DNA of 63,741 nucleotides, filler included, from Klebsormidium nitens (taxonomy: Eukaryota; Plantae; Klebsormidiophyceae): NCBI GenBank assembly GCA_000708835.1. It is 5 parts of 5 records of this genome, joined end to end, with 100 filler letters (N's around TTAATTAATTAA, not from the genome) between each part and the next. Parts side by side here need not be neighbours in the genome. Positions count along the whole stretch, not along the records: positions 1 to 26,970 come from DF237817.1; 4 more parts are not named here. One strand, given 5' to 3'. The position numbers were made by a program, and so were the translations under genes. Shown here one piece after another: positions 3,701 through 27,070 of the stretch (the stretch's first letter is position 1; each line of letters starts with the position of its first letter). The notes beneath the pieces are model-generated. The model had not been told where the DNA came from. It did no database searches and saw only the letters and a list, made by a program, of their open reading frames with translations.

Positions 3701-4505
3701 CAACACCAGCAAACAGTAGGCACCCCATCAAGTCAATGCAGGAAACACACATGCAGACGAACAAGAGACAACCTCCACATGGGAAACAAGCAGAAATTGA
3801 TTATACATGGTACTGTCATCAACTGGGATATGAGAAGGGTGAATGCTGCAACGTCGATATTGAAGGCCGCAGAGAGAGAGAGAGTTGGCAACTGACTTGC
3901 CCAACACTTACTTGCTGTCTTCTCCCACGACCACTTGCCCACTCGATGCTGTGAGCGCATCATCCCCAACGCTGAGTGGAACAAAGTAGCCTCCAGTTAG
4001 AGGCAGGTGCTCATCGGCCAAGTGCAGTGTCAGACACAGGCAAGATCCCCATGGAAGTAGAAAGGTTTCAGCATAATCATGTCAGCAAGTTTCTCTCCAA
4101 TTGCTACCTCTCTCTTGATGCTTCAAAATAGTCTCCTGAGCAGAGCGTTTCTCACATGTCCGTGTTTGCTGAACTTGCTGCAGTGTCAAAGGCTTCTCTA
4201 GTTGCTTGAAAGCTGTAGGACGCCGCAGCGGCACGTGCTGGAGGAAACCACTCTCGCCTGCAACTCCAGAGGGGAACAGGCATTGATGACCTGGGATAGG
4301 GTCAGAGAGGGCGGACGTTGTGCCAATTGCCGTTGATCACCAGAGCATGCAAACAAAAGCAATCTCAGAGGAGGAAACAAGCACCTGACGAAAGATCGAT
4401 AGGGCATTGGTCCGATATCCCAAAGGAAAATGTGTTTGTCACTTACGTTTGCAAGAGGATGTCAGGACCCCGAAGCGGCTGTATTGACAATGCTAAGCAA
4501 GCCAT
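772..4505 (-). CDS. TML: TPLATE complex muniscin-like subunit (N-terminal longin-like domain, DPF/acidic linker, C-terminal mu-homology domain); multi-exon
   Basis: Spliced exons read MACLALSIQPLRGPDILLQT|REWFPPARA (4505-4447, 4257-), GDDALTASSGQVVVGEDSK, FRVVYRLVNSVYVLG, ACRGVDVTAEKVNRKYAE|VYLALDAILHG. These closely match the plant TML N-terminus as I recall it. The large last exon (about 2571-772) has RDPF and FGGGFD motifs and an MHD ending GVYL. Confidence 0.9.
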
Positions 4506-5937: not shown

Positions 5938-8900
5938 ATGGAATTTGTCAGTGGCGGAATGGACGCCTACCACCAGGCCCTAAAGGCCCTTGCGCTGGCC
6001 CCTCCTCTCAACAAGCCATCTGAGCTTGACCGCATTGAGCCGCTGTTTGGCCAGGGTAGTTCGGGCGGTTCAGGTGTTAGCCGCAGCGATGGGAAGAAGA
6101 GCCGGGCAAGGAAGGGCACAGGACGGGGAAGCAAGAGCAAGAAGCACAAGGGGAAGGCAGGGCCTGGTGCCGAAGCAAGCGTGCAGACATTCTGGGCGCA
6201 GGTGGGAGGCGCTTTCTGAAGTCCTTGAAATTTCGCCTCCACAAATGTTCCTGAAGTGGCCACTTATTAGCAAGCACTGCCCAATGACAGCCTTTTCTAT
6301 CTTTGTAGTAGTGGCGACACGACTGGTCTGGTCTTTGAAAACGGTATTTGCTCATCAGGTGCTGATACATTGGAGTCAGAAGAGAGTCTGTGATACTGAG
6401 CGCCTTGAAACCTGAGAAGGATTAGAGAAGCGGTGTAGAATGCTTTTTCTTCATCTTCCAATTGCAGCACAAGAAACTCTGCCCCTTTTTTGCCACCCAT
6501 CTCAAGCGTGGCAGAGAGCTGCCAGGTGAATCAGTCTCAGCAGATTCTGAGGGCCGTTTATTGCTGCATCATTAGACCTGAAGACACCACGTGGCAAGAT
6601 TTTATATTTTTCTATCCTGTTGGGCAAGGTTGATCAGGTACTGAGCAGGTTTACTTTGAGACGCTTTATGGTTTTGACACAGGTCCAAAAGAAGGGCTTG
6701 CTGATTGTTGTTGTCTCTCAACAGAATTGTTGAAGGTGCTGGTTGAAGGAGCTCGCCCCTTGCTTTATTTGGTGCAGGTTGAGGACTACTTCCGGGACGT
6801 GCGCGATGCTGATGTGCAGCTGTTGGCGCCGCGGCCGCCTTTGGAGCAGGACCCGCAGCTGGCTGTGCCGCGGCTCGGGCGGCCGTATTGGCAGGTGTGG
6901 CAGGAGGAGGACGTAGCCCAGCAGCGCTCCAGCAGTGCCGCCCAGCAGAAACAGTCTGCCACAGTGGCCAAGCAGAAGCTGCTGTCAGCCAGCCCTGTGA
7001 GCAAGGCCAAGAAACGGCCTGCAACCGAGACATCCTCTGCCCCGCTCGTCACCTCAGTGGTAAGGCACAATCAGTCCAGGGAGCCTGTCTCGTGCATCCC
7101 GCCATTGTGGCACAAATGAAGCGCATGCGCCTCACGGAGAAAATATCAGAGCCCTGGGCCAGGCACGAATCAAGCATGCCTACGATGTGCTCTTCAAGAC
7201 ATGCGCTGTCTAGTGTGAGTTGCCTCGTATTGTGCCAGTATCACAATTGCCCAGTTCAAGATATGCCGCTTATCTTGTCCCATTGTATCTTTTCTGCAGC
7301 TGTCACCGTTACTTGACGAGAATGATGAGCCCTGCGATGTCTGCTATGAAGGTGATTCCGATGAGCTGAACGAGATTCTGTTCTGCGATGGCTGCGACGT
7401 TGCGGTGCACCAGAACTGCTATGGGGTGGCCACGGTCCCTCGCGGAGAGGAGCCATGGTTTTGCCTGCGCTGCAGTGCGCCGGACCCGAACGCCCTCTCC
7501 TGTGTGCTGTGCCCGCATAAGAAGGGGGCCATGAAACCGGTGGCTGTCGAGGGGGGTCCCCCTGTGGGCCAGCACGCGCACCTCTTCTGTGCCCAGTGGG
7601 TTCCTGAGACGTACATCCGGGAGGGGGATGGGGCAGTCATGAACGTGGGCGGGGTGCTCAAGGAGCGCTATAAGCTGACATGCGTACTGTGCAAGGTCAA
7701 GCAGGGGGTCTGCATCCAGTGCAGCCACGGTGAGGCACCGCCTCCTGCGATGAGGGGGGCCAGAGCTGCATTCCAGCCCAGGACGGCACAGGCTGTCGCT
7801 GAGTGGTCTCCTTGCTCTTGGACACTGATGTGTGCACCTCCTTTGTTGTCAGATGTAAGCTGCTTAACTGCATGCAGGTCATGAGGGCGTGGCTGTGTTT
7901 GGCAGCAAACACTTCTCATTGCAGTGTCGCATGATTATACAGCTTGATGAGAAGAAAAAGAGAAGGCGATTGCAGTGCCCCGAAGAAAAGTGTCCGTGGT
8001 GGCCTTTTATTTTGTGCTCACAGAGTCATTTAGTCCACTTGTGTCGGCCCTGCAGGTCAGTGTGCTGTGGCGTTTCATCCCCTGTGTGCGCGGGCCAATA
8101 AGCTTCAGATGGAGATTGCAAGCAGGGAGGATTCGGAAGAGGTGTGTCTCAGCCTGGGCTCCACTTGATGAGGCAGGGCAAGCATGGAGCTCCTGGTTGT
8201 CTGATCAATGTAAACAGTGCCCGGCATGCGAACAGCTATTGGCTGTGTAACCTAGCAGTTTTCCAACGTGAGCCGTTTCTGAGCCTGGCAGATGCACACG
8301 AGGTCAAGTTAAGGACTGCCCTCCATGAGAAGTTTCTTTGCTCGGCACTCCGCCTTGTTCCGTCCCACTAGCCACCAGAAAGCATCACCATGCAAGCTCA
8401 AAACCTACTTTCACTGACTCAGATGCGGCCATCCTCTCCTGTAAAAATCCACAAGGGGTAGGTTCAAGCCTTGTATCTCAGAAGCAGGTGCCTTCTGGCT
8501 TTCCTTGTGGGTCTGATAGAGATCTGTATCTGCCTTATCAGAGGAAGCCTTGTCACGCTGTACAGGCGGTACTGTTGAGTGCGCTCTTTTCCTGCCACTC
8601 CTTGTAGTAGTGCACTGCGAGGGCGGCTTGCCCTGATTGCCTCCGCTGGTTGCTACTACGGGCTGCGTTTTGAAAGCTGCGCAATTTTGCTCCTTTTTTC
8701 CAGGTTGAGCTACGCGCTTTTTGTGCCAAGCATTCAAAAGAGCGGCCCGCCCACGTGCTTGACCTGAACCCTCCCCCGGAGCCCCAAGAGGGGCTGCTTC
8801 CCCCGCCAGGAGCGGCCACCAGCGGCCCAGAGACGGACTTGAAGCAACAGGCGGGAGCAGGGCCAGGCAGAGCGCCATTGGGGGAGGCGGCTCAGAGTGG

Positions 8901-11900
8901 CTGGACAACTCGCAAGGATGCGATCCCCCCAGGAGCATTGCTGCCCAGCTTTGACAGTGCGGGGAATGAGGAGGCAGCCGGATTCAGGCCAGCGCAGGAC
9001 TGGGCCTCCACTCCTTCAGCAATTAAGGGCAGACCTCTACAGTTGCGCGGCGGGGCGCCTGAGGGGGACGAGACTGAGGATGAAGGGGACGATGAGGACA
9101 TGGCGGGGCTGCCCAGTCCTGTGGAGGGGGGGCTGGCACGCGAATTGGCAACCGACTCCGAGGCTGAGGACGGGGAGGGCAGCGACGATGATGACGAGTA
9201 CGCAGGGCTTGGTGAGGACCCTGGGGGAGTGGCAGACAGAGGGGCCGCAGCAGAGGCACTGCTGCCGGCGGGACCGCTGAACACATTTGAGCTGTCGGTG
9301 CTGGCCCCCGAGGAGCGGCGATACCTGAGCGCGGCAGAGCAGGCGCAGGTGGACAACCTGCTGGCGTGCCTGGACTCCACGGTGCTCATCGAGCTGGCCA
9401 AGGGGGTCATGGCACAGCTCAACATTACGCAGACGGCGCTGGCGCACATGGCGCAGGTGTCGCAGAGCATCCTCTCCTACTGGCTGCACGGCCGCAACCG
9501 ACCTTCGCAGGAGGCCATCAACGTGAAGATGCGCGCCTTCCTGCGCGGCTATTGCATCGCCACCGAGGTGCCTGCCGAGACTGATGACGACGTCGGCACC
9601 TCGTTCGTGGCAGAGGGGCAGTTGCCGTACTACGATGTGGAGGGATACTACCCTCAGGCGGGTTACGCGGTCCTGGAGCAGGACGGGGTGAACAGCCATG
9701 GGGGAGTGAACGGGGGCCCTGCTGGGGGGGCCTACGAGGGGGTGAGTGAGGGGTCGGAGCTGCTGCACCACCTGGCGGCACGCACTGCCGCTAGCACAGG
9801 GCGCGCGCTACACCACCAGGCTGCACCAGGGGCGGCCTCAGGTCGAGGGGAGGGGGGCCCAACAGGGCCAGAGGAGGACGGGGAGCGCTGGACCTGCAGG
9901 CAGGGAGAGCAGGACAGCAGCAGCAAGGCGGTGGGAGGCGACAGGGAGGAGCAATGGAGGGGGGAGCAGGCAGGAACGGAGCCAGATGGCACGAGTAGCC
10001 GAGCGGGCGCGGCAAGAAAGGCATTGAGAAGCCAGAGGAGGCGGGGAGGGGGGGCAGGTGGCTGGGGTGGAGCAGGGGCCCGACCGGGGGCCGATGCACT
10101 GAGCAGCATACAGCAGAGCGAAGATCATACGGTGGGGCCCATTCTGCAGGAGCATTCGGCATCAATACAGCTGGACCACGAGAGAAACGGAGGCCAGGCT
10201 CAAGAGACGACTGCAGGGCCGAGCTCGGCGCAGCTGCCCCCGGAGAAGCGGCCTGCCGTACCCCCTACCCCGGCCCCTGGACCTCCTGCGGCTGAGGCTG
10301 CTCCGCAGAGTGGGGCGGTGGGCCAGGCCCTCAACGTAACCCCCACCGCTGAGCACGGCATCAGCAGCAGGGTGCGCGGAGCCGCCCGCACCAGTGCTCT
10401 GCGGGCCGCCGCCTCCATGGCTGCGGCAGCAGGGGCAACGGCTGGCCAGGCTGGCCAGCGAGGGGTGTCGGGGCAGAAAAGAGGTGTGCCCCCCCTCGGG
10501 CTGAGCGAGCCGGAGGAGGTGCACGCGTACACACTTGCTTTGGCAGACCCGGGGGGTGCAGGGCGCAAGAGCAATGATGGTGGCAGGGCTCGGGAACCTG
10601 GGGAGCAAGGGGCTGCAGGAAGTGGTGCCGGGCCAGCAAGAGGTGAGGCTGGAAGATACCTTGGAAGGAGAATGTGGGGTCCATACTTCAATGCTGGAAC
10701 CCCACACTGCTTTGCACTCGGCGCCCGCAACTCATATGGTGTTGTACTATTGGGCATCACTCGGTGGCTTTTCCTTGTTTCCGGGAACACAAGTCACGTC
10801 TGCATGTTCGGTATAACGAGCATTCGGTGGTTGTTCGATGGGTCAGTTACAAGCTCAAGTCTTGTAGTGCGTACCATGGAGTTCTACTTGATCTACACGT
10901 GGCAGGGCTAGCTGTCAGCTGCTGGCGCACCGAGTACCAATCGTTTTGGGGGTCAAAGTGAAAGCAGAGTCCATGTTCTCTTTCCATCCGTTCCCTCAGG
11001 AAGCTGCTGCTTGTTTTTAGACGAGGATATCCGCTTCCAGTTCTTCTGTGTGCTCATCGGGCATGGCTGCTGGCCTTGCCCGTCCTTTCCGCTGCTGCAC
11101 CCGTATGCAGGCCCGGCGCTGGGCCAGGCCCTCAGGGCTGTGCTGCCTGGCTCGAGTCTCCCTTTAGAACAGTGGACCCGCTCTGATAGCCTCACACCTC
11201 TGCTGGCCCCCCCTGCAGGCACACCGGGCACGCCCAATGGGGTCAGCCCAATGGGAAATGTGGCGGCGGGCGAGCTGTCAGTGGCGTGGCAGGAGGCGCA
11301 GCTGGCGGCCGCCCGGCCGCTGCTGGGGCAGGCCCCCGAGGACGAGGTGGTGGGCGAGCTGTACGCGCAGCAGGCCGCCCTCTTGGCGCAGCTGGCGGCC
11401 AACGGCGCCCGCGCGGCACGACTGCTGCAGCAGCTGCTCCCGTGGCTGCCGGCGCAGCTGCGTGGTGCGCGCGTACGCGGGGAGCAGGCGCGTCTGGTGG
11501 ACCTGTACCTGGCGGCGGAGAAGGAGGCCAAGAAGCACGACCGCAAGCTCAAGAAGGACAAAGAGGCGGCCGCGCTGCTCGCAGCAGCCACCGCCGCCGC
11601 TGCCGCCTCGCCCCGCAACTCGCACCTGCGCAGGGAGGGCTCATTTGGGGGAACTCCGGGCGGGTCTCCGGGGGCGTGGGAGGCCGGTGCCAGTGCGGCG
11701 GGGCCCACCAGCGGAGGCATGGCAGCACCTCCGCAACAGATGGATCTGGCGCGTGCGGCAGCTGCAGGGGCGGCGGCGATTGCCAGTGGCAAACCGCCCA
11801 AAGCCCCCGGGTCCGGGCCGCGCAGTGGCGGGCCCAGCAAGCCCCGTGTGCGGCAGAAAGGGCTGGGCGGGACAGCAGTGCAGGCAGGGCGGCCGGCTGG

Positions 11901-14376
11901 CCGCGGTCCCGGGGCAGGGGCGGGTGAGAGTGGTGGAGGCGAGCGGAGCTGGCGGGGCAAGCCGGTGCGGCCCACCTTGCCGGACGAGTGGCCGCAGGCA
12001 GCGAGCGGGGAGGCGCTGTGTGCGGTGTGTGGGCAAGGGGAGTCGGCAGCGCCCAACGAGATCGTGTTTTGCGAGCAGTGCGGCGTGGCGGTGCATCAAG
12101 AATGCTACGGCGTGCGCACCATCCCGACGGGCCCCTGGTGGTGCCAGCCGTGCGCATACCAGCGCCAGCACCGCGGCCCTTCTGCTCCCGCCCTCGCGGC
12201 AATCCCGGGTGAGCCCCCGGGACGGGGCCACCCTGGGACGCAGTGCGCCCTGTGCCCTGGCCGGACGGGCGCCATGAAGCGGGCCACGGCAGCAGGCCCG
12301 GACGCGGCGCCGCGCTGGGTGCACGTCTTCTGCGCGCAGTGGATGCCGGGGACGAACCCGGGCAAGGGGGAGGGCGCGCTGGTGGAGGGGCTGGAGACCC
12401 TGGGGGCGGACTGCGCCAGCGCGCGCTGCAGCCTCTGTGGGAGCAAGCTGGGAGCGTGCCTCACGGTGAGAAATGCGGACAGGCTGAGGCCCCTTGCGAT
12501 AGTGCATCTGCGGATTGGGTAGGTTCGCGGAAGGCAGTGCCTTGCCATGCTGGCCGGCTGCGTACTCCAGGAGCGGGTGCCTCACGCTCCCGTTCGTTGT
12601 GTGCAGTGCTCTGCGGCACGCTGCTCCCACAAGTTCCACGCCTCCTGCGCCCGCAACGCCAGCCTGGCCATGACGCTCCAGGTAATGTCCGCCCCCATGC
12701 GGCGCTCGCCTGCCTGGCGCCATTGGCGTGACGCTTGGTGTCCCCTGCTGCTCTTCTCCTCGGGGGTGGCTCCCTTCTGCTGGCCGCAGCACCGTAGTGT
12801 GACGCCGTGTGCCTCGCTGGCCTGTGCAGTCCACTCCCGACGGCCGCCTGCTATACCACCAGTACTGCGAGCAGCACTCAGCGCACGGACAGGCGCCGCC
12901 CGGAAAGGTGGGTCCCCTTTTGGCGGCAGAGCACCCGCACCCCCACTGTTCGCTCTTGCTGCTCGGCGTGTCTCGTGGATGCGTCCGGGCCGGGCTCGGC
13001 CCGCGACCTTGTTGTGTATAGCACGCCAAGAGGCCTTGCTGGTGCAATCAGCTTGTTTATTGCTGTATCGTACGTCCCGCCTGGCGAGATGCATCAGGCC
13101 CACTATCCAATTCCTGCGCCACTCAAGTGTTGAGAATCGTAAACTTCGACGTGTCGAAGGAGACAGAGGGTATGGAAGACCCAACGTGAAGTAGCCGGAG
13201 CTGTGCGGGTCTTGGCTTGCGGTTGCTACTGACGGCCGACTCCGCTGAGAGTGGCATGGAAAATCCGGCGAGTTGCAGCTAGGACTGCCTGCGTCTCCTG
13301 CTTCAGTTTTGTTTCTGGGTTTCTAGGGTTCATCACTAGCTGCTCCTGACATTTCTTGCCTGTTCTGCCTCAGCCGTTGCTGCCTGTGACCGGCCCCTTG
13401 TTTTGCAGGAGCCCGGCCCTGCCGCTGCTCCCGACAAGGAGCAGCAGCTGGCGCAGCTCAAGATCGTCCGGGTACGCCTCCGCCGCTGCCTCTCGCCACT
13501 GCGTGCCCCACCCATGTTGGCGCTGGTCGTGCTGGTGCTGGATCTCCTTTGCCCCGGCTGGTGGGGGCCGTGCCTGCGGTGCCTCTGCCGTTGCTGCTGT
13601 GCATCTAATCAGTGCCTTGGCAGGTTTGTCTTTGACGTCTCTCCGTGCGGTTGTGTGGCAGGTCGAGTTTGAGCGCGTGCGCATGATCTGCGACCGCCTG
13701 ATGCGCCGCGAGAAGCTCAAGGTTAGGCCCCGCCGCCGCCCGCGTGGCCCTCCTTCAGCATGGCAAGAACCCCTTGAGACACGTCACTCTCCGGCGCCTT
13801 GCTCGGCCAGGCCCCTTGCTGCGACTGGTGGTGCGTCTGCGGCGCCGGCTGTGCCTGACACGTGGTGCTGTTTGTGTGTCGCAGCGCGAGCGGGTGCGCA
13901 CACTGCGAGAGCTGGGGTCGGCCCAGCTGGCCGCGGCGGCCCAGGCCGTAGCGGCGGCGGGGGGAGGCGACCCGGAGGACCGCAGCCCGACGGTGCGGCC
14001 GCAGCGGCAGAGGAAGGGCAAGGGGCGAGACGGCGCGAACGAGGGGGAGGGTGAGGGTTCGGCTCTAGGGGAGCCAGGCCCCGGCAGCAGCGGCAGGCCC
14101 ACCGACGAAGCCATGGGGCCGCATATCAGCGGGCCACGCACAAACCTGCACCAGAAGAAGCGGTCAGCCGCAGGAGAAGGGGCACGAGATGCCAAACGGG
14201 CGCGGCTGACTAAGCCGGCGCAGGAGAGGAAGATGGCCTCCCCCGCCAGCAGCCCGCACAGTAGGAAGCAGCATGCAAGCCCCGCGCAGGGGCCCTCCGG
14301 GGCAGACGGGCGGCTGGGCCCAGAGTGGGCCCACCGACAGGATGTTCACAGACAGGACACGCATGCTGGCTTCTAA
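5938..14376 (+). CDS. Double PZP (PHD-Zn knuckle-PHD) finger chromatin protein, BRPF/JADE-like, resembling plant At1g77800-type proteins; about 11 exons
   Basis: FWAQ|VEDYFR junction (6201/6778). PZP1 [31 protein letters not shown]...HLFCAQW...FHPLCAR...VELRAFCAKHS (7300-8740). Conserved APEDEVVGEL and AAATAAAAASPRN segments. PZP2 CAVCGQGESAAPNEIVFCEQCGVAVHQECYG...HVFCAQW...FHASCAR (12000-12900). Coiled coil VEFERVRMICDRLMRREKLK|RE. Start codon tentative. Confidence 0.85.
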
Positions 14377-15695
14377 GGACAGGGGCGGGTGCACATGGGA
14401 CGAGTGCTGGCTTTGTGCCCACGTGCTCTGCGTTTTGCCAAACAAATGCTCGAGGAGCCTGAAGCATATCAGGTGGCTGCATCCCACCTGAACGTGATAC
14501 ATGGATCTTCCGGCTGAGTCGTCTGCGCACAAACGTGTCGGCTCCTGTGTATCAAAGTCGCTCTTTCCTTTATCGAACGGTAGCTTTTTTTGACGTTCTT
14601 CATAAAGTAGGAAGTGTGGATGTGATCGAGAGTCTCCTGGCCGTCATCGAAATGCATGGGTCATGAAGAGAGCTCGAGCACATCAAGTAAAGCAGGAATG
14701 ATTGGATGATTATTTTAATGACATGTTCCTCCCAATTACGTCAGCAGAAGCGGGCATTTTTTATGACTTCCTCGCATGCAATCACAGTTGTGCAATGATG
14801 TTGACCATTTTCTTATTATACTACAAGTTGATTGGTTGATGGATTTTAAGGTCCGTTCGGGAGCCGCATTATAGATCTAATGATTGTTCTTTTATCTAAT
14901 TTAATAACTGTCGCTTTTGATAGAACAAAGTATTCAATTATATCATAAATCTTCCATCAGGCGGCCCTCGCTGTGCGGACGGACGCTGCAGGATATTTGA
15001 TATGCACGAACGGACTCTTTATGATAGCTTAGTGTATAGCTCATACTGACCGGCCCGGATTCGTACGGCCGGCCTCACGTCGCGCAGACTCGCTGACTCA
15101 TGCGGGATCCAGCCTGACCTGCATATGGCTGTGCCAAGCAATTTTGTATGTCGGGGCGCCCCGGCGGCAGCGGCGAGCCTAGGCGGCCCCCTCAGCAGTA
15201 ATACACTATAAGAGCATATCCTGTCTCATGCACCATATCGAAGAGAATCAAACAAGTTGGAGGTTTGAGTTCTGTGTATGCACGTCTCAAAACCTGCAAT
15301 TAGATTACATATGCGCATGAGTCGGGTACTAAGCTGCTTCAATATTGGATGGCATGCTCATTCTGCATTCTAAGTATGGCACTCATACCGTACGCCTGGA
15401 AAGAGCGCAGCTTAAAGATATGATAATTCCATTGCAGATTAAATGCATGAGGCTTGGAAGACGGACTCAGAAACAAGCTTCTAATTGTAATTAGACCAAA
15501 ATTCATTCTTGCTATCTTCAGTGCAGGACTTATAAGCAAGTAGTGGGCCGGATTGTGTAACCGGCTTTGCCAGTCGTATAACAGCCGCCCACTCAGATAA
15601 CATTCGCCAACTTTCGAAAAGTTAAATCAACTCGGTATACGCACTATACTAAATACTAAATGTAGTCAAAACATCATTCCGACGTGCAAAGGCGC

Positions 15696-15764
15696 TCGGA
15701 ACTCCAGTCCACGTAGCCGAGAATAATACTACATCGGAACTCCAGTCCACATAGCCGAGAATAA
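15696..15764. repeat. 38-bp-period tandem duplication
   Basis: tcggaactccagtccac(g/a)tagccgagaataa at 15696 and 15734. Confidence 0.9.
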
Positions 15765-15859
15765 ACTAAACCGCGGGCCCCCGAGTCCAGCTCGACTTCA
15801 TTGAGTGCCAATTCCATGGGCCCAGCCCTGCTTGGGTTTTAGGATTTTTAGCTATAGTT

Positions 15860-16330
15860 TAGATTTGTTTAGTTGATTTAACGTCGGTTCGGAGCTGTGG
15901 TCGGCTAAGTCGACGATTGTCTCTATTTGTATTTCTACATGCACTAAACTCGCTCTTAAAGCAAAGCTTAAGTGTAGATACTTTCCTTTCGCATACTTAT
16001 CCTGCAGATTAAGGAAGGACTTCAGATTCTTCTCTCCTCTCACCTCAAAGATGCAAGGGAAATATTTCCTAAGGTCCGTATACGCTGGGCATTTGTACAG
16101 GAAGTGACATTCGTCCTCTACTTCACCCGTTGCACAAAGAGCACAATACCTCTCTGCTCGAGGTTTTCCCTGCCAGGCTCCGGTTTCTATAGCCAAATTA
16201 TCATTGAGCTCCAAGTCTAAATTTGGCTAGCGCATGGAGAAACATGCTCTATTTGGTCTAAGTAGGGCTCATAGGAGTAGCCTTGCTTCACCTCCTCGAA
16301 GTAAGCTATAGGGGTAAATCAACTGCCAGA
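15860..16330 (-). mobile_element. Decayed 3' end of a non-LTR retrotransposon (LINE ORF2 C-terminal zinc knuckle)
   Basis: Frameshifted ALAKFRLGA / NLAIETGAW...RYCALCATGEVEDECHFLYKCPAYTDLR is the typical LINE ORF2 C-terminal CCHC region. It is followed by an aaatcaactaaacaaatc-type tail. Confidence 0.75.
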
Positions 16331-17285
16331 TGAGAAGACGGTGTGACTTTAGTTCCATATGCATGTTCTTTGGAACTTAACCGTCGACGTCCGTATATGG
16401 CCTGACGAACTCGCATATTGAATCAGGATTGAATCTACGAGTATACCGCCTATGGCTCAAAATGATGGTATTCGTTGTAGTACTATCTGCAGGCCATCAT
16501 TGCGGCATAGCCAGGCCCTGAAGAGCTGTAGCACCCACCACTGTTTGCAGGCCTTTTACTTGAGGGTTGGCGGCCCAGCGGCGCTAGCTAGCTAGACTGG
16601 CCGTCACTTTCAGATACGGCCGGGCATTTGGTAGCCCGGGCCGGGCCACAGACATTACAGTCACTGCGGTAGCCTTGTAGTACGACTATAGCAGAATGTA
16701 CACCCAATGCATCTATCCCCGCACACGCGCGCCTCATGCAGCCTCTTTTCCAACTTTCATGCAAGTCATGTATCACATCAGTCATGCTATGTACATGTTC
16801 GCATACATCAAAGAGAATTGATAAAATGAGCAGCATGCCGCCAGTGGCATGCATGGGCGATTGTCGCTTTGTCGCCATGGGTCCCACAAAACAGTCGAGG
16901 GCCAATCTTACATTTACCACACAAAGTAAATAGTGCAAGTCGTAGATTTGATTCAAACGACGACAAATGGCCTGGCACAGCCGGTGACAGTGTTTACTAA
17001 AGCTAAGATGGGTATTCACTGATTAGTCACACAGCCTAACCGAAAGCTGAACCCCACATGAACGAACTGATAGCCTCTCGCTCCTAGGAATTCGATGCAA
17101 AGTCTTTCAAAGAACTTGAGGCTTTAGCTCGCTCAAGCATGCAAGAGCAAATTGGCTAGTATTCAACACCCTGCTGCAATAAAATAGGCCACTCGGCCCT
17201 TCTGGTACAATCGACTTCCAGCACGTTATTTTGGCCCCCACTGCTGCGGCCAACGTACATGCTTCCGGCCATGTCCGCCTGCGCA

Positions 17286-19959
17286 CTACGCCTCACTCGG
17301 CTCGTAGTTGAGCATCTGCGAGAGCCAGCGCTCGGCGTCTTTGAGCGGCATGCCCTTGCGCGCTGCGTAGTCCGTCACTTGGTCCTGCCCGATTTTGCCC
17401 ACCGCGAAGTACTGGCTGTGCGGGCTCCCGAAGTACAGCCCCGAAACACTGCAACCCACACGTACCGGAATTAGGTACATCCGGCCGGCAACCATGTAAA
17501 AGCAACAGCCGACCAACGCGATGCCAGGGCCTACCACACGCGATTCAGGCGGCCAGTCCCCGACAAGGCGTTACCCCTGGGCCGCTGACCTTGCGTAGAG
17601 GTGAGCTTGGCAAAGGGCGCTCACCTGGCGGCGGGCAGCATGGCCATGGACTCGGTGAGACTGATGCCGGTGGTGTCGGCGGCGGCCATGAGCTTCCACA
17701 TGGTCTCCTTCTCGGTGTGGTCCGGCTGGCTGGGGTACCCCGGCGCAGGCCGGATCCCCGCGTAGCGCACCTTGAGCAGGTCCTCCGTGGAGAGCGCCTC
17801 GTCAGCGGCGTAGCCCCACACGGCCTTGCGCACCTCCGCGTGCAGCACCTCCGCAAACGCCTCGGCGAGGCGGTCCGCGAGCGCCTCTGCCATGATGTAG
17901 CTGTAGTCGTCATTGCGCGCCTTGAAGTCGGCCACCATGGCGTCCAGCCCGAAGCCGGTGCTGACGCAGAACATGCCCACCCAGTCCGCCACGCCGGCGC
18001 TCTTTGGCGCCACGAAGTCGGCCAGCGCCAGGTACGGCTCGTCCGTCTCCTTCTCGCTCTGCTGCCGCAGCGTGTGCAGCCGCGCCGCGACGGTGGTGCG
18101 CGTCTCGTCGGTGTACACCTCGATGTCGTCGCCAACCGCGTTGGCCGGATACAGCCCCACCACGCCGTGCGCGGCCAGCTTCTTGCCCGCCACGATGTCC
18201 GCCAGCATCGCCTGCACCACCGGCGCACGCCGCGCTCGGATCAGCCGAGTGCGCCGCCGCAGTCGAGCGGGCCAACTAAAGCAGAGCACAGCCAAACGAT
18301 TAAACTCTTGCAAAGCACCTCGGCACCGAACCCAGAGGACGCAAAGGAAATCTTTTCGAAAGGCAAACGCATGATGCCTCAGCTTGCAGCCGGACCAGTG
18401 TGTGACGTGAGCAGGCGGGCAGAGGGTATCTGCGTGCTGCCTCACCTGGGCCTCATCGAACAGCTTCTTGGCCTCGGCCCCTACGGTCTCGTCGTTGAAG
18501 ATCTTGGGGTAGCCACGGTTGGGGTAGCGGCCCCGCAGCTGCCACACCTGTCACACAGCCCCCCCTTGTCAATCCTTGGCGCTTGCAAATCGAGGGGCCA
18601 CTTCGGCCGCAAGGGGCTGCTAACTTAGTTTTTTTGCTACACGAGCTGCAGACGCCGTCCAGCATCAGCAGGAGCCTCCGGCGAGCACAAAGGGAAGCTT
18701 CCCTCGCTTCGGGCTGATGCGCTTTGGTATCGCGCGGGTGCTGACCTGGAAGAAGGGGTTCCAGTCGATGGCGTCCAGCAGCTGGTCCAGCGGGAAGTCG
18801 CGGTACACGGTGTTGCCCAGCTTGGCGGGGCGCACCGGCGCGTTGGCGGGCAGCTTCCAGTCGACCGCCAGGCCGGCGTCGCGCGCCTTGGCCAGGGGCA
18901 GGTACTTGCGGTCCTGCAGCCCCGCGTAGTGCTCCTCGCGCAGCTCCCTGCACGGACGCCACCCCGCGCAGCCTCAGCACGCGGGCCAGAAACAGGGGCC
19001 CCTTCCCGTCAAGCTGCTGACACGGCAAGCACTGGCAGGATCGGGGACGCCACTACCGGCGCCGGTCCCTTTTTAGTGTAGATTCCAAAGCCGCCTTGGT
19101 GCCACAAAGAGCGACTTTTGTGGGGGTGGGGTGTGGGCACTGACTTGTAGGTGTCGCGGATGTCTGCCGCGAAGTCGTCCCGCGCGGTGGGGTCCAGCAG
19201 GGACGAGACGACGGGCACGCTGCGGGACGCGTCCAGGACGTGCACCACGCTGCCGGCGTACTGCGGCTCCACCTTGACGGCGGTGTGCATGCGCGACGTC
19301 GTGGCGCCGCCGATCAGGAGCGGGATACGCAGCCCCTCGCGCTCCATCTCCTTGGCCACCGTCACCATCTCGTCCAGCGACGGCGTGATCAAGCCTGCGT
19401 GCACACCAGCAGTCGCCGTCAGCACCAAGACAGGCCGGCGTCAGTGATGCTGCGAGGCTGTGATGACCCTCAGGCTGCGGCTGCGGCCGCGGCTGCGGCC
19501 AGCAGCCCGACAGTGCTCGACGCACGGGCGTGCCTCCCGCTCAGGCAGGTGAGGGAAGTGGGGCAGAGTTGGGGCAGCCGCAGGACGGGCCGTGCGGTGC
19601 TGGGCGCGGGGGCGCGCTCACCGGAGAGGCCGAGGATGTCGGCCTTGTGCTCCTTGCAGGCCGCCAGGATTTTGGCGCAGGGGCACATGACGCCGAGGTC
19701 GACGACCTTGTAGTTGTTGCACCCCAGCACGACGGCCACGATGTTCTTCCCGATGTCGTGCACGTCGCCCTTGACGGTGGCCAGCACCACGGTGCCCGCC
19801 GTGCTGGCCTGCTCCGCCATGTCCGGGTTGGCCAGCAGCGCCGCCGCCTTCTCCTCCTCCATGTACGGAATGAGGTGCGCCACCGCGCGCTTCATCACGC
19901 GCGCGCTCTTGATGACCTGCGGCAAAAACATCTTGCCCGCGCCGAAGAGGTCGCCCACG

Positions 19960-19994
<35 letters not shown>

Positions 19995-22900
19995 GTGCAG
20001 CGGGCGCGCAAAGCGGCCGCCGGAGCGCGCCTCCTCCGTGTCGGCCACCACGTACTGGTCGATGCCCTTGACGAGCGCATGCGACAGCCGCTTCTCCACG
20101 GGCAGGGCGCGCCACTCGTCCTTGTTGCCGCCCACGGCCGCGCCAGCCTTGGGGTCCACCTTGGTCGCAAACTCCAGCATCTGGAACACCAGTACCCCAC
20201 GATCAGAAGGGGAATCGATGTGCAAAACCAGAAAGACAAGCATCTCGCCTTCCAGAGCTCTCCAGAACCAGTGTCCAGCACCCGACGTCCATGTGTGGCT
20301 ATGGGACGACTGAATTTTGATGCTAAAGGTCACCGATGCTCCCATCCAACTTACCTGACTTCGCCGCACATGTGGCAGGAACTTCGAAATAAGCAGCCAA
20401 GTATTCTCCTTGATTCGTTGTAAGAAGAGTCGAGAGATTGTCGTTGGTATTCTAGTACAATCTGCCCTGCTTTATGGCAAAGGCGAGCAGTGGAGGCGCT
20501 CATCAACAGGCGTTCAATTCTGATGGCCGCAAGACGCCAGAACAGCGACACCGGCCATGTTTCAGAGTGAGCGGCGCTTCGCAGTCACCCGCTCGGTAGC
20601 GTCGGGCCGCCTGTTGAGGATGCAGTCCTCGACGTGCGCCAGCAGGTCCTTGTCGATGTCGTCGTAGATGTCGATCTGGCCCGCGTTCACGATGCCCATG
20701 TCCATGCCGGCCTGGATCGCCCAGTACAGGAACGCACTGCACCAGCCGCCACGTGGCGTCAGCAACCCATGACACCAGGAGCGCCATCTCGCCGCCCCAT
20801 TGAGGAGCTTCAGGGAAGCGCAGGGCAGCGATTGCAGGCAGCAGGGGCCAGCATGGCACCTTGCGTCAGCAGGGGCGCCTCGGTAGTTGAGGAGCTGGCC
20901 AGGACGGGAGCCCTGCGTTTACCTGTGGAAGGCACGGCGCACAGGCTCGTTGCCACGGAAGGAGAAGGAGATGTTGGACACGCCGCCGCTGATCTTGGCG
21001 CCAGGGCAGATCTGCTTGATCTTGGTGGTCGCGCGGAAGAAGTCGACGGCGTAGTTGTTGTGCTCCTCCAGGCCGGTGGCGATGGTCAGGATGTTGGGGT
21101 CGAAGATGATGTCCTCCGGATTGAACGCGCACTCCTCCACCAGGATCTTGAACGCGCGCGCGCAGATGCGCACCTGGACACCGCACCACAGACAATGGTT
21201 TAAAGAAGGCAATGAACGACGAGGCCTCTGCTTGTGGTGAACAGCGTAGAATAAGACTTGCGGCACGCTGTCAGGGCATCCTCTGGCACTAATACGTGCA
21301 GCGCCTGCGAGAGCGCTCTGCCGGGGGACGTTGCCCGGTGCGAAGCGTGCGGGGCTGACCTTGTCGTACTCGGTGGCGGCCTGGCCGTCCTCGTCGAAGG
21401 CCATGACCACGACGGCGGCCCCGTGGCGGCGGCAGATCTTGGCGTGGCGCTTGAACTCGTCCTCGCCCACCTTGAGCGATATGGAGTTGACGATGCACTT
21501 GCCCTGGCTGCACTTGAGGCCCGCCTCCACAACGTGAAACTTGCTGCTGTCGATCATGAACGGCACCTTGCTCGCGTCCGGCTCCGAGACGAGCAGGTTC
21601 ACGAAGCGCGTCATGGCGGCCACGGAGTCGAGGAGGCCCTCGTCCATGTTGATGTCGATCACCTGCGCGCCCATCTCCACCTGCTTGATCGCAATCGCCA
21701 GCGCCTTGTCGTAGTCGCCCGCCAGCACCGCCTTCTTGAACACAATGCTGCCCGCCACATTGCACCGCTCTCCAATGTTAATGAACGGGATCGTCTCGGG
21801 CGTGTAGTTGAACGCCTCAAGCCCGCTAATGCGCAGCATGTTGCGCACAGACGGCACAGGGCGCGGCTTCTCCCCAGCAACCTGCACCACACGACACCCG
21901 TGGAAAGTCAGCACAAAGACGAGCACGCACACCAGTTTGCTCCGACCAATCGCTTGTCTTGGTGCGGACAAGAGAGCGGACGGTCCTCTGAGGAGCCAAC
22001 CAACAAGACATGCCTCCCTTCAAAAACGTTGCGGGCAAAGCCAAGCCTGAACAGTCCAACGTTCAGCATTGTTTTGGTGCGCCCAGCTGACCTCCTTCTG
22101 GGCCACAACAGCCACCGACTCTTCCAACCGCAGCATGCCTGAGCCCGCCAGTGTTGCTCACCATGTCGGCAATGGCACGGATGTGGTCAGGCGTCGTGCC
22201 GCAGCAGCCGCCAATGATGTTCACGAGGCCCCCCGTGGCAAAGTCACGCACGTTCTCCACCATCTGCGCAGGCGTCTCGTCGTACCCGCCCATGGCGTTG
22301 GGGAGCCCCGCATTGGGGTAGCAAAGCACGAACGTCTCGGCCAGCTCGCCCAGCGTCTTGATGTACGGCCGCATATCACGCGCCCCCAGCGCACAGTTAA
22401 GCCCCACAGCCACGGGGCGCGCGTGGCTGACGCTCACCCAGAAGGCCTCCCCGGTCTGGCCCGACAGCGTGCGGCCCGACTGGTCCACAATGGTCCCGCT
22501 GATCATAACGGGGACCTCGTAGCCCACCTCATCAAAGAACTCGTCAATTGCATACAAGGCAGCCTGCACACAGCCAGCCGTAAATTATTCGAGTGCCACG
22601 CGAGCGTGCAAGACGCAGTTGTCATGGCAGGCGCTGCCCACCATTGGAAATGCCTCCAAAGTCTGTGCCACAACCTGAACCTGGCAGCCTGAACCTGGCA
22701 ACCCGAACATGGCAACCCCAGTGCTGATGTCTATGCAACAGGCAGTGGCGAGATAAAGGATCAGGCTACCGAACGTGCATCCGTCAAAGTGCTCGCCTCA
22801 GCATGCGGCGTGCGGCGGCGTACCTTGGCGTTGAGGGTGTCGAAGATGGTCTCCACCAGGATGAGGTCCGCGCCCGCCTCCACCAGCGAGCGCACCTGCT

Positions 22901-25227
22901 TCGTGTACGCCTCCACAATCTCGTCAAAGGTGCACGCACGGAACGCCGGGTTCTCCACGCTGGGGGACACCGACAGCGTGCGGTTCGTGGGGCCCACCGC
23001 TCCCGCCACAAAGCGCGGACGAGTCGGATCTGCTGCCTCTGCACGCTCCACAGCGCGTTGCGCAACCTGCCAGAAGCAGCAAGAGCATGGGCTGGAAGGA
23101 TGGCAGGTAAGCAGGGCCTCAACAAACCTATGGGCATGCCCTGTATTTCCAGGGCCATCAATTGTAAAGACCCCAGACATCGACCTGAGCTGCCCTAAGC
23201 AGCAGTGGGTCAACTTGTTTGAAGGACTATTTGATAGATCACGCGCCCACAAGTGCGCCGGCGGCGCCGCTGACTGGCAGGCCGAGGTACCTAGGCACGG
23301 GCGCACACCTTGACAGCCTCGACATTGATGAGCGCCACCTCTTCGTCAGCCTGGAGGTCATAGTCGGCCTGACTGATAGACGTCCCGTTGAACGTGTTGG
23401 TCTCGACAATGTCAGCTCCTGCGGACAGGTACTCGAAGTGGATGCCCTCAATCACGTCGGGCCGTGTAATAACCAGCAGGTCGTTGTCCCCCTTCAGATC
23501 GCAGTGGTGCGCAGCATACCGCTCCCCCCTGCACGCCAAGCCGCAGATGCATCAACAAGCGTGAGCGCAGGCCTCAGGATTGCACACCTGCACGATGCTG
23601 CGTCAAGCACGCCGGCAAGCCGGACCTCAGGAGCTTTTCTCTCAAGGGCCGTGCGCGCTGACCTGTAGTCCTCCTCCTCCAGCTTGTGGCGCTGGATCAT
23701 GGTGCCCATGGCGCCATCAATGACCATAATGCGCTGCCGCATGATGCCGTCCAGCGCAGCAAACAGGTCGCGCCCCACAACCCGCTCGTTGCTCTTGCCG
23801 TCTGCCGTGACCGCCTCGTCGGGGTCCACGCGGGCAGCCCCGTCAACAACGTAGTGGAACGTGCAGCGCCCCTGCGGCAGGACATAGTCCAGGTAGAAGC
23901 AGCCCGTCTCCGAGCGTGACGGCTTGAGTGCCGCGGGCTTGCCCCCCGTGAAGGCCCCCATCACCGCCACACTGCGGCCCCCGTGGCGCCACACAAACTG
24001 GGTCACGCCAGGCTCTGCCAACACAAAGAGCGCTTAGCAGGCACGCAGACAAATGAGAGCGAGAAACAACCAAGGGACCCGCCCAGCAGGCTGATGAGCC
24101 AGATGAGACTGATGAGGATGCTAATACCACCAACAGTCTCATGCAGGCAGGGACACCGCCAATACAAACCTTTGCCAGTACTCGTTGAGTCAGACTCGGC
24201 CTTTATACAGAAAAACGTGAATCATTGAGGCCAATGCAAGCAGCCAGCCGACATCTCATGAACTTGGATTAGGCACTTACTGTCACTTTTGGGACTGGGG
24301 CGCCGTTTGCCGGGGTACTTGATGTCTGCAAGGTGCACACAAACCTGGATATTTAAGTACACAGGGCGCTCGATTCTGCGGTGATATGATCCATGATGTG
24401 ATCCCCTCGTTGTCTGAAGACAGGTTGTCAACACTGCACACATAGATCTATTATGCTGCTCCTCTGGAGGGCCATGATACATGATCTTGCATAGCCGAGT
24501 GGCCGCCCCTGCCCCGTGCCTTTTCTAGCGGCTGCTCACAAGCCTGGTTAGCCGGGCATGCTCTGTGTGGGATCCCTGCCCACCATGGTTACCAGGGCAG
24601 CCTGACACCAGCACGAGTCCCTCTAACCCAGATCTGCCCCTGTTCCTACTGCTAGCCCCCACCATGGGCCCCAATGGCGGGCGCGGTGCTCGCCGCCTGC
24701 GCATCCCCTGCTGGCTCACCTGCTTTGGGGAAGTTCCAGTCCAAGCCATCCTCCACCGCCGCCGCTGCTGCTCCTGCTGCTGCCGCCTCCTTCTCTTGCA
24801 CGTCACCGCTGCTGCCTTTGTCGCCAGCATTGGGTGCTGCTGTTGCTATTGCTGCCGCTGCTGCCCCCTTGCCTCCACTTGCCAATGCCACAGTGGCATC
24901 CCCCTCCGGGGCTGCCCCTTTTGAGGCACCCTGGGTAGATCTGTCTCCTGTTGCATCGGGACCCTTAAGCGCAGGCTTGGCCTGGGCGGACGGCGTGGCC
25001 GGCAGCTCCTGCAGCTGCACGCTCCGGGGTGCGGATCCAGCCCGGGGGGTGTGAAAGCGCGCCGGCAGCAAGAAGAGGCCCGCGAGCGCCAGCAAGGCTG
25101 CGGGGAGCAGGATGGGGAGCAGGAAGAGGGACACAGGCCAGGCAGCCAGCACGACCGCAAGCGAGCTCACCGGCCTCGCCTTCAAAATTGCCACCAGCTT
25201 CTGCAAGGACAAAGCAACCCCCGCCAT
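17286..25227 (-). CDS. METH: Cobalamin-dependent methionine synthase (MetH) with N-terminal extension (hydrophobic hairpin, linker, CBM48-like domain); about 14 exons
   Basis: All MetH modules are present in order. Hcy-binding: [30 protein letters not shown]. Pterin-binding: [39 protein letters not shown]12 cap and binding: [46 protein letters not shown]. AdoMet reactivation: [24 protein letters not shown]. Stop TAG at 17286-17288. The 5'-most exon (25227-24720) is less certain than the core. Confidence 0.95.
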
Positions 25228-26590
25228 GATCGCGAAAAGCAATCTGCAGCACGGCGTGGAGCCCACTGTCCGGGTTGCTAACAAGCCGAAGACACAACCT
25301 CCTGGCAGGGTCTCCCCGCTTGCAATGCAGGCAGAACACCAGCTACAGACCAGCTAGCTTCCAGATTGAGGATCACTAGGGGGAAACCATTTCTTGCAAG
25401 GCTTCCTGCAGCACAAGGCTTCCTGCAGCACAAGGCGCGTGACGTCGACGCAATGGATCGTAGACAACCTTTGTGGGGGGGCGGCCGAGTTCCGGGATAT
25501 GGTACCTGTACGCCGCCCTCCGGGGCCTGAGATACTCTCTAGAATAGTTTCAGTATTAGCTCAAGTTTTAGTAAGAACGAAGCTAACACTAGAACCTAAA
25601 CCCAAATATTCATCCGCTCCGCACCCGTACCCATCCTAACCACCATACTAATAACCTACCCTTCCCAGGTACTAAAACTTGAGCTTACAAAACCTTTTCT
25701 AGAGAACGACTCATCGCCCTGGGAGCCTGGGGCGATCACATCCACACATACCGGTAGCTATTAATATACCGGTATAGGTAGAGATCATTTAAAGTGAGTG
25801 GATCTGCCTTTATTAGGTACGTACCTACGACGGTACCTACGGTACGGTAGTACCAGTGGGAGGGGTATTACAGTACTTATTACGGTATACGGCCAAGGTA
25901 CCCATACGGGTACTGGCAACGGTCGCTTGCACTATTAAAAGCCGTAGCTTGCACGAAGATACACAGCTCCCGGGCACCCATCCTAAAACCCTAACCACAC
26001 AAATTATTCGCTCTGAACCCGCACCCGCACCCATCCTAACCACCAAGCTAACCCTACCGTCCCCCGGGTCCTTATCTTACTATGCAAGCTCAACTTTCCT
26101 TCTCACGCGTCACGCTGAAAATCAACGATATTTCGGCCTCGTGCCGCTAAACGACAAGCTCCCTCATCCACAAAGAGCGTCGGATCAGAAACTCCGCTTA
26201 TCGACTGCCATAAGAGAAGGAAAGTTCATATCTGCACGGTACGATGAGTACTCGGTTTGGACATGCCCGCTACGATGAGTTCACCAATCATTTGCATTGA
26301 TGATACGCGGACAGATCACCTGGATTTATCGATTTAACAATCAATAAACAAATCATAATCCACTCGGAAATCCAGATTGTTCAGTCGTCGATGCTGCTCG
26401 GGGCCTCGGGCAAGCACCATGGACGGATTGGGTCGCCGGATGTAAGTGTACAGATTCTAGGTACCGGGTATCACAAGACTACCCGGTAATTGTCCACCGA
26501 GCATTCAACGGGGCCCCTGGGCCTATACAAAAAGCCTCAATTCACTTTCGGCTTTCCTCGGCCCACATACCCGGTGTCGTAAGTCCCGTA

Positions 26591-26745
26591 CTAGGAGGGG
26601 ACCGCCCGAAGGGCGGTCTCCCTCCTAGCCCAGTCTAGTTAGAGCAAGCCCTCACCCGCAAAAACTTCATGGGCTGGGGTGGCCGGAGGCGACCCCATCC
26701 CCTGCCAAAGGCAGGGATGGGTCGCCGAAGGCGGCCCCCTGGTAG
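26591..26745 (+). mobile_element. Two GC-rich hairpins each followed by CTRR|T; Helitron-like 3' termini (tentative)
   Basis: Hairpin 26591-26628 (17/18-nt arms, GAA loop) followed by CTAG|T at 26635-26639. Hairpin 26688-26726 (AAA loop) followed by CTGG|T at 26739-26743. Confidence 0.4.
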
Positions 26746-27070
26746 TTATATGCATTTCTTGCTTCCTAACTTCCAATGTTGATTGTCAAATCACCATGAT
26801 GTGACAAAAATGTTTTCAAGAACTTATATACAATCCTGGCCTTCGAGCATGCCGCCTACGGTATATGGGTACTGAACTTCTGAATTGGATCTGACAATGT
26901 ACGAAGCAAAGATAGAAAGATGTACCTATGTAGGTCGGAGTCTACGGTATAGCAGTACCTCGTTTGCATANNNNNNNNNNNNNNNNNNNNNNNNNNNNNN
27001 NNNNNNNNNNNNNNTTAATTAATTAANNNNNNNNNNNNNNNNNNNNNNNNNNNNNNNNNNNNNNNNNNNN

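Follow-up and report, generated by a model that had tools for sequence, protein, structure and literature searches.

A methionine synthase of Klebsormidium nitens with an N-terminal extension comprising a predicted membrane anchor and a CBM48 domain lacking canonical glucan-binding residues

The cobalamin-dependent methionine synthase (METH) gene of Klebsormidium nitens encodes a protein in which a hydrophobic, predicted membrane-anchoring segment, a linker and a CBM48 domain precede the MetH enzyme. This architecture is real, expressed and conserved, and very little doubt attaches to it. The locus lies on scaffold DF237817.1 of assembly GCA_000708835.1, which supplies positions 1 to 26,970 of the window, the whole 63,741-nucleotide stretch of DNA that was analysed; another protein encoded nearby clusters with GAQ91847.1 of K. 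nitens. The gene runs on the minus strand, and exon coordinates are given on the plus strand. The gene model contains 15 exons, with a CDS from 25227 to 17286 encoding 1,517 residues, and comprises the following features:

25228 to 25547, minus strand: 5' UTR of exon 1, with contig ends at 25489-25547, a 4-codon uORF and a stop codon at 25354-25356
24720 to 25227, minus strand: coding part of exon 1, residues 1-169, with the ATG at 25225-25227 (spliced contigs, ORF)
25063 to 25170, minus strand: hydrophobic segment of 36 residues (residues ~20-55), a predicted membrane anchor by hydropathy
24751 to 25062, minus strand: Ala/Gly/Ser/Pro-rich linker by composition, residues ~56-159
24721 to 24750, minus strand: conserved 10-residue motif at the end of exon 1 (alignments)
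24281 to 24325, minus strand: exon 2, a 45-nt mini-exon encoding 15 aa (contigs)
23663 to 24014, minus strand: exon 3, CBM48 followed by the MetH N-terminus (GT-AG borders from spliced contigs, Pfam)
23776 to 24009, minus strand: CBM48 beta-sandwich, residues ~187-264 (Pfam, AlphaFold2, Foldseek, alignments)
23309 to 23528, minus strand: exon 4, S-methyl_trans (contigs, Pfam)
22824 to 23066, minus strand: exon 5, S-methyl_trans (contigs, Pfam)
22162 to 22563, minus strand: exon 6, end of S-methyl_trans with GLNCALG and GGCCGT (contigs, Pfam, motifs)
21360 to 21881, minus strand: exon 7, Pterin_bind, with a read-supported 5' border and a predicted 3' border
17286 to 21173, minus strand: block of exons 8-15, from Pfam on coding blocks, with the stop codon at 17286-17288
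20923 to 21173, 20589 to 20736, 19622 to 20180 and 19145 to 19394, minus strand: exons 8-11, with predicted introns
18746 to 18947, 18446 to 18547, 17625 to 18211 and 17286 to 17448, minus strand: exons 12-15, with predicted introns

The 5' half of this model is supported by transcript data. Approximately half of the sampled words in 22000-24600 were present in the best public runs, which matches the expectation for exon-only RNA. Contigs from four runs belonging to four studies were aligned over 21500-26970, and the six intervals that they omit all begin with GT and end with AG on the minus strand. Exons 1 to 7 are joined by these spliced contigs, one of which, 5,134 nt long, covers all seven; the joints on either side of exon 2 (24014/24281 and 24325/24720) are present in all four runs. 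Coverage of the introns was confined to low-depth contigs (depth 2-5), as expected for pre-mRNA. Across 24014-23529, where the initial annotation had proposed a transcript check, spliced contigs connect the CBM48 exon to the downstream MetH exons. Because they also reach upstream exons, 23663-24014 is the third exon in a longer transcript. The two further coding exons ahead of it (24720-25227, coding part, and 24281-24325) contribute the start codon, the hydrophobic segment and the linker. For exons 8-15, the introns were placed from GT-AG borders, reading frame and MetH continuity and not from reads.

A single long ORF starts at ATG 25227 in the spliced transcript. This is the first AUG of the frame and stands in the context ATCATGG, with an in-frame stop codon upstream at 25354-25356; the leader of ~320 nt contains only one uORF, of four codons. 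The contigs would also be compatible with a shorter isoform that has its start downstream of this ATG.

Exon 3 contains the junction between the two protein families. On the minus strand, 23663-24014 forms one open exon in which CBM48 and the start of MetH share a frame with no stop codon between them. Its translation matched the Pfam family AMPK1_CBM (PF16561) over residues 5-76 with an E-value of 4.6e-11 and 43.2 bits, compared to a curated cut-off of 26.8 bits, and residues 97-115 aligned to positions 1-20 of the S-methyl_trans profile. A spacer of ~10 residues separates the last CBM strand from the N-terminal helix of MetH. An in-frame CBM48-MetH fusion within this exon had been described earlier from the DNA alone, and since Pfam matches both parts, no stop intervenes and the spacer is so short, both its coordinates and its reading were correct. 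The single-exon translation likewise stood except for its first residue: the codon straddles the exon 2/3 junction and so reads K, not E. The fusion had also been argued not to be a splicing artefact, and that view holds: the junction lies inside one exon, and contigs of four studies cross every exon junction over which they were aligned.

Downstream of the extension, the gene product is, as judged from its sequence, a complete cobalamin-dependent methionine synthase. Pfam analysis of the exon blocks identified all five MetH modules in order (PF02574, PF00809, PF02607, PF02310 and PF02965). Positions 1-283 of the S-methyl_trans profile are covered across exons 3-6, and exons 8-15 encode the remainder of Pterin_bind, B12-binding_2, B12-binding (DVHDIG) and Met_synt_B12. 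In the spliced model, GLNCALG is found at residue 510, GGCCGT at 574 and DVHDIG at 1036. We take the cysteines of the first two motifs to be zinc ligands and DxHxxG to be the cobalamin-ligand motif, the roles established for E. coli MetH. The MetH core is of ordinary length (~1,250 residues) and is preceded by ~265 extra N-terminal residues.

The CBM48 domain was modelled with AlphaFold2 using a 41-sequence alignment, which gave an all-beta domain with a pLDDT of 93.8; an earlier run on six sequences (pLDDT 53.5) was discarded in favour of this alignment. A Foldseek search of the PDB returned Sip2 of yeast SNF1 and the CBMs of AMPK beta1 and beta2 as the best matches (2qlv, 1z0m and 4yee), with TM scores of 0.78-0.86, an rmsd of ~2 A and a probability of 1.00, while SEX4 ranked lower. 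By sequence, the best solved relatives were the AMPK beta1 CBMs, Sip2 and LSF1. The clusters returned by a feature-based search of the ESM Atlas with exon 3 were all generic CBM48 clusters from bacteria and fungi. The CBM48 identity claimed initially was thus upheld by the Pfam and structure checks, as AMPK-beta type by HMM and by fold.

The residues that contact sugar in this family have largely been replaced. In the cyclodextrin complex, the contact residues are W100, K126, W133 and N150 (PMC4032982), and glycogen binding by the AMPK beta1 CBM is abolished by W100G or K126Q and weakened by W133L (PMC6274970). HMMER alignment to 1Z0M, 1Z0N and 4YEF placed W100, K126 and W133 of rat beta1 at G209, H238 and A245 of the K. 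nitens protein. The N150 equivalent is retained as N260, together with the VDG..DP core. The other CBM48 domains of the 41-sequence alignment have W, K and W as their consensus in these three columns. Among the fused copies compared, which come from relatives of Klebsormidium, from Closterium and from two metagenome fragments, none has an aromatic residue at either tryptophan position where it can be aligned. The fused copies also share a motif specific to them, A(L/M)KPS....G.FY(L/I)D...PQG. The domain is a CBM48 family member by HMM and predicted fold, but its carbohydrate site does not carry the expected residues. The initially suggested link to carbohydrate stores is unlikely because W100, K126 and W133 are replaced by G, H and A and no aromatic residue is found at the tryptophan positions of the fused copies. 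With the canonical glucan-binding residues gone, the extension is better read as serving in tethering or docking.

When exon 3 was used as the query of an exhaustive search that relied on no profile, few proteins were returned that span both the CBM and the start of MetH: two JGI metagenome fragments (79% identity) and CAI5937700.1 of Closterium sp. NIES-64 (54%). All three N-terminal exons are present in the relatives L002 and L003, in which exon 3 is 79% and the anchor ~75% identical and the mini-exon is conserved. The three-exon N-terminus is arranged alike in L007, a Logan contig of 93% identity, again with a conserved mini-exon. In Closterium sp. NIES-64, an intron splits the CBM, and the last CBM strands and the start of MetH lie in one exon that also contains the MetH segment that follows; as deposited, this locus is annotated as two models of 249 aa and 677 aa. 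The CBM48-MetH junction also falls within one exon in L004, an AT-rich metagenome contig (36% GC), while L005/L006 provide a further CBM copy on a contig that ends at the junction. The search for the same architecture elsewhere, recommended in the initial annotation, was productive in close relatives, in Closterium and in L004. Scanning metagenome contigs with the junction alignment returned no match. Two long multi-CBM48 matches, P0005 and P0036, were considered as fusions and rejected, being an amylase and a TPR protein. Because the fusion is shared by the distant lineages Klebsormidiophyceae and Zygnematophyceae, it is old within the streptophyte algae.

Ahead of the CBM, the hydrophobic stretch of ~35 residues is flanked by K/R on both sides and contains internal prolines, with AAWP in its centre. 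Its Kyte-Doolittle maximum is 2.57 over 19 residues and 2.43 over 32, and its ORF ranks first by hydropathy among the 121 ATG-ORFs of the window. Neither a Pfam search of exon 1 (no family) nor an ESM Atlas search with the anchor (no match) identified a relative. The linker that follows differs in length and sequence among relatives, with indels and a repeat expansion in L002, and the 10-residue motif that terminates exon 1 is identical in L002, L007, P0189 and P0190.

The extension shows the signature of a translated and constrained protein. Between the window and L002, dN/dS was 0.08 over 58 anchor codons (28 synonymous-only and 14 non-synonymous codon differences) and 0.30 over 84 CBM codons; against L007, the value for the anchor was 0.12. 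For the intron that follows exon 3, no similarity was seen. In the comparison with L007, sequence just upstream of the ATG has diverged freely and identity rises abruptly to 93% once the ATG is reached, and conservation starts at the ATG in both L007 and L002. By these codon comparisons the anchor and the CBM are under purifying selection, which, together with the diverged intron and the step in identity at the ATG, argues for a functional extension whose translation starts at AUG 25227. The anchor is long and hydrophobic enough for membrane insertion (hydropathy 2.57) and is conserved (dN/dS 0.08-0.12), and as a prediction it is equally compatible with a single span, a hairpin or an insertion of the lipid-droplet type. 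The earlier suggestion that the extension might direct the enzyme to a specific location gains support from this predicted N-terminal anchor.

Conservation of the anchor was confirmed only in Klebsormidium-like relatives. Hydrophobic reading frames were also observed elsewhere. A same-strand ATG-ORF immediately precedes the first coding exon of MetH in Closterium (L001, 9847-10038), where it ranks 2 of 65 by hydropathy, and in the alga L009 (9720-10001), where it ranks 1 of 112. Both contain a central W(R/P). The start of MetH in L009 is 75% identical to that of K. nitens, and no CBM48 was found within 10 kb upstream of it. BLASTP of the K. nitens anchor against the two hydrophobic ORFs gave no significant similarity. 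If these candidate first exons are real, membrane anchoring of algal METH may be more widespread than CBM48, as the hydrophobic ORFs adjoin MetH upstream in both Closterium and L009.

The reading that we somewhat favour, at slightly better than even chances when taken as a whole, is that the first ~265 residues constitute a lineage-specific targeting and docking extension. Its parts would follow in the order of a basic-flanked hydrophobic segment, a fast-evolving linker of ~100 residues with its terminal motif, a basic mini-exon and CBM48. The hydrophobic segment, as predicted from hydropathy, would enter a membrane in the form of a signal anchor or a hairpin, either of which fits because basic residues stand on both flanks and prolines inside. 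The catalytic part would stay on the cytosolic face of the membrane; the partners of MetH work in the cytosol (PMC11439496). The degenerate CBM48 would no longer bind alpha-glucan via the classical site and would serve as a protein-docking or spacer module, by analogy with the AMPK-beta CBM, which docks on the kinase lobe. Methionine synthesis might thus take place at a specific membrane or partner instead of being coupled to starch.

Two alternatives assign the domain a function closer to that of its relatives, and both appear improbable. A working starch- or glycogen-binding CBM48 could bring MetH to glucan stores or let glucan regulate it. The genuine AMPK-beta-type fold, the retained N260 and VDG..DP core and the purifying selection on the domain would all suit such a function, and other CBMs bind glycans via non-canonical sites. 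Starch in the green lineage is plastidial, and the N-terminus appears to resemble a membrane anchor, not a transit peptide. The substitutions weigh against glucan binding as well: three of the contact residues are G, H and A, the tryptophan positions are never aromatic in alignable fused copies, and in AMPK beta1 either W100G or K126Q alone is sufficient to abolish binding (PMC6274970). A similarly low probability is given to a CBM48 derived from AMPK-beta or SnRK1-beta that recruits or answers SnRK1 and so ties methionine and SAM synthesis to energy signalling. The closest solved folds, Sip2 and the AMPK-beta CBMs, contact the kinase domain, which speaks for this proposal. The layout of anchor, disordered region and CBM also, by an analogy that we assume here, resembles the N-terminal half of AMPK-beta. 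Against it, the AMPK-beta C-terminal interaction domain is missing, since MetH directly follows the CBM, and the position equivalent to S108 is not conserved among the fused copies.

The remaining alternatives concern whether the extension is part of the protein at all. Translation could start at an internal Met near the start of MetH, leaving the upstream ORF as a relic or regulatory leader, and in-frame Met codons do occur in a 15-residue stretch just ahead of the MetH core. This is very improbable given the dN/dS values of 0.08-0.30 over anchor and CBM beside a freely diverging linker and introns, the retention of the CBM48-MetH junction in both Klebsormidium and Closterium, and a first AUG in good context with nothing but the 4-codon uORF ahead of it. 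An assembly or gene model that wrongly joins two neighbouring genes can practically be dismissed. The two models annotated at the Closterium locus would speak for such an error, but in K. nitens both parts lie in one exon and spliced contigs of four studies cross every junction, and the arrangement is repeated in the independent assemblies L001, L002, L003, L004 and L007.

A literature search returned no paper combining CBM48/PF16561 with methionine synthase/PF02574, and the initial description of the architecture as undescribed agrees with the literature searched. A phylogenomic survey that covers METH in over 1,600 data sets from plants and algae names no Pfam domains beyond the five standard ones (PMC11439496). 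The fusion would be classed, from its domains, as a variant of a known enzyme. The accompanying statement on the loss of MetH from land plants no longer holds, since METH is retained in hornworts (PMC11439496).

METH is usually regarded as a soluble, cytosolic enzyme of five modules, and these five alone are scored when B12 use is surveyed in algae and early plants. The N-terminal module described here, whose anchor is conserved among Klebsormidium and relatives and whose CBM48 is shared as far as Closterium, implies that methionine and SAM synthesis may be spatially organised or partner-docked in the lineage from which land plants arose. It offers a handle on where B12-dependent one-carbon metabolism occurs in these cells and a possible marker for tracing the history of METH into hornworts. 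It also provides a natural CBM48 that carries G at the W100 position, the laboratory substitution that abolishes glycogen binding, yet is kept under selection. A tentative extension of these results, which we consider possible but less than likely, is that METH of the streptophyte ancestor, and perhaps that of hornworts, was tethered to membrane by the anchor, with a sugar-blind CBM48 as docking domain at a defined organelle surface, or that the module couples the enzyme to SnRK1 signalling. Such a site may lie beside the machinery for B12 export and loading or beside homocysteine export.

The enzyme part of K. nitens METH closely follows known systems. E. coli MetH and human MTR have five modules in identical order and share the zinc-ligand and DxHxxG motifs, but lack the ~265-residue N-terminal extension with its hydrophobic anchor and CBM48. 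The extension is most similar to the CBMs (PF16561) of AMPK beta, Sip2 and SnRK1 beta, with which it shares the fold, the F.W..GG..V.V.G.F and VDG...DP patterns and an N-terminal placement behind a disordered region. It differs from AMPK beta in that no C-terminal alpha/gamma-binding domain is present and an enzyme follows the CBM; S-methyl_trans succeeds the CBM directly, and Pfam identified no other family in the exon blocks. LSF1, SEX4 and the PTST family resemble K. nitens METH in joining CBM48 to another functional part, and LSF1 and SEX4 are weaker matches to its CBM48 by sequence or fold. These proteins are plastidial and starch-associated. K. nitens METH is unlike them in that its N-terminus is not transit-peptide-like and its binding tryptophans are missing.

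In one public RNA run (X8, organism B), the MetH transcript contig departs from the window at 25341 (site 25341–25344), just past a minus-strand AG, and continues for at least 255 unlike letters that match nothing in the window. This divergence reflects either an alternative 5′ exon located off the scaffold or a chimeric contig. The six read-supported introns of the gene (window 21882–24719) range from 134 to 394 nt in length, and all six terminate in GCAG at their 3′ ends.

Window positions 1–26970 correspond to K. nitens scaffold DF237817.1 (GCA_000708835.1), an assignment made via the adjacent protein GAQ91847.1. Two genes and one short open frame were identified beyond the MetH 3′ end:

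772–4505, minus strand: neighbouring gene for a muniscin-type mu-homology-domain protein of 809 aa (GAQ91847.1)
5938–14376, plus strand: neighbouring gene for a PHD-finger protein of 1,671 aa
15855–16226, minus strand: open frame of 124 aa containing a Cys/His-rich stretch

The large exon of the PHD-finger gene also displayed a weak match to HTH_3. The interval separating this gene from the MetH 3′ end (15000–17000), in which the 124-aa frame lies, is low in GC (46–49%). No Pfam match was obtained for the frame, and the low-GC stretch containing it may represent the degraded remains of a mobile element.

The METH locus of Closterium sp. NIES-64 (L001, 10001–15690) is annotated as two models of 249 aa and 677 aa. 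The 249-aa model, CAI5937700.1, contains the CBM and the MetH start and is apparently mis-spliced. Strongly hydrophobic ATG-initiated frames were observed upstream of MetH in this locus and in L009, an algal contig encoding MetH without CBM48:

L001 9847–10038, plus strand: hydrophobic frame directly 5′ of the first MetH coding exon
L009 9720–10001, plus strand: hydrophobic frame directly 5′ of the first MetH coding exon

By hydropathy, the upstream frame ranked second of 65 in L001 and first of 112 in L009. Both are candidate MetH first exons only, their splicing to MetH being putative, and no sequence similarity was found between either frame and the predicted N-terminal membrane anchor of the K. 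nitens protein.

Within L009 (10001–15118), the S-methyl_trans and Pterin_bind half of MetH is present in two tandem copies of identical sequence. This arrangement may reflect a true duplication, or it may have arisen artificially during assembly. The N-terminal half is also doubled, similarly to L009, in the Aureococcus protein P0021.
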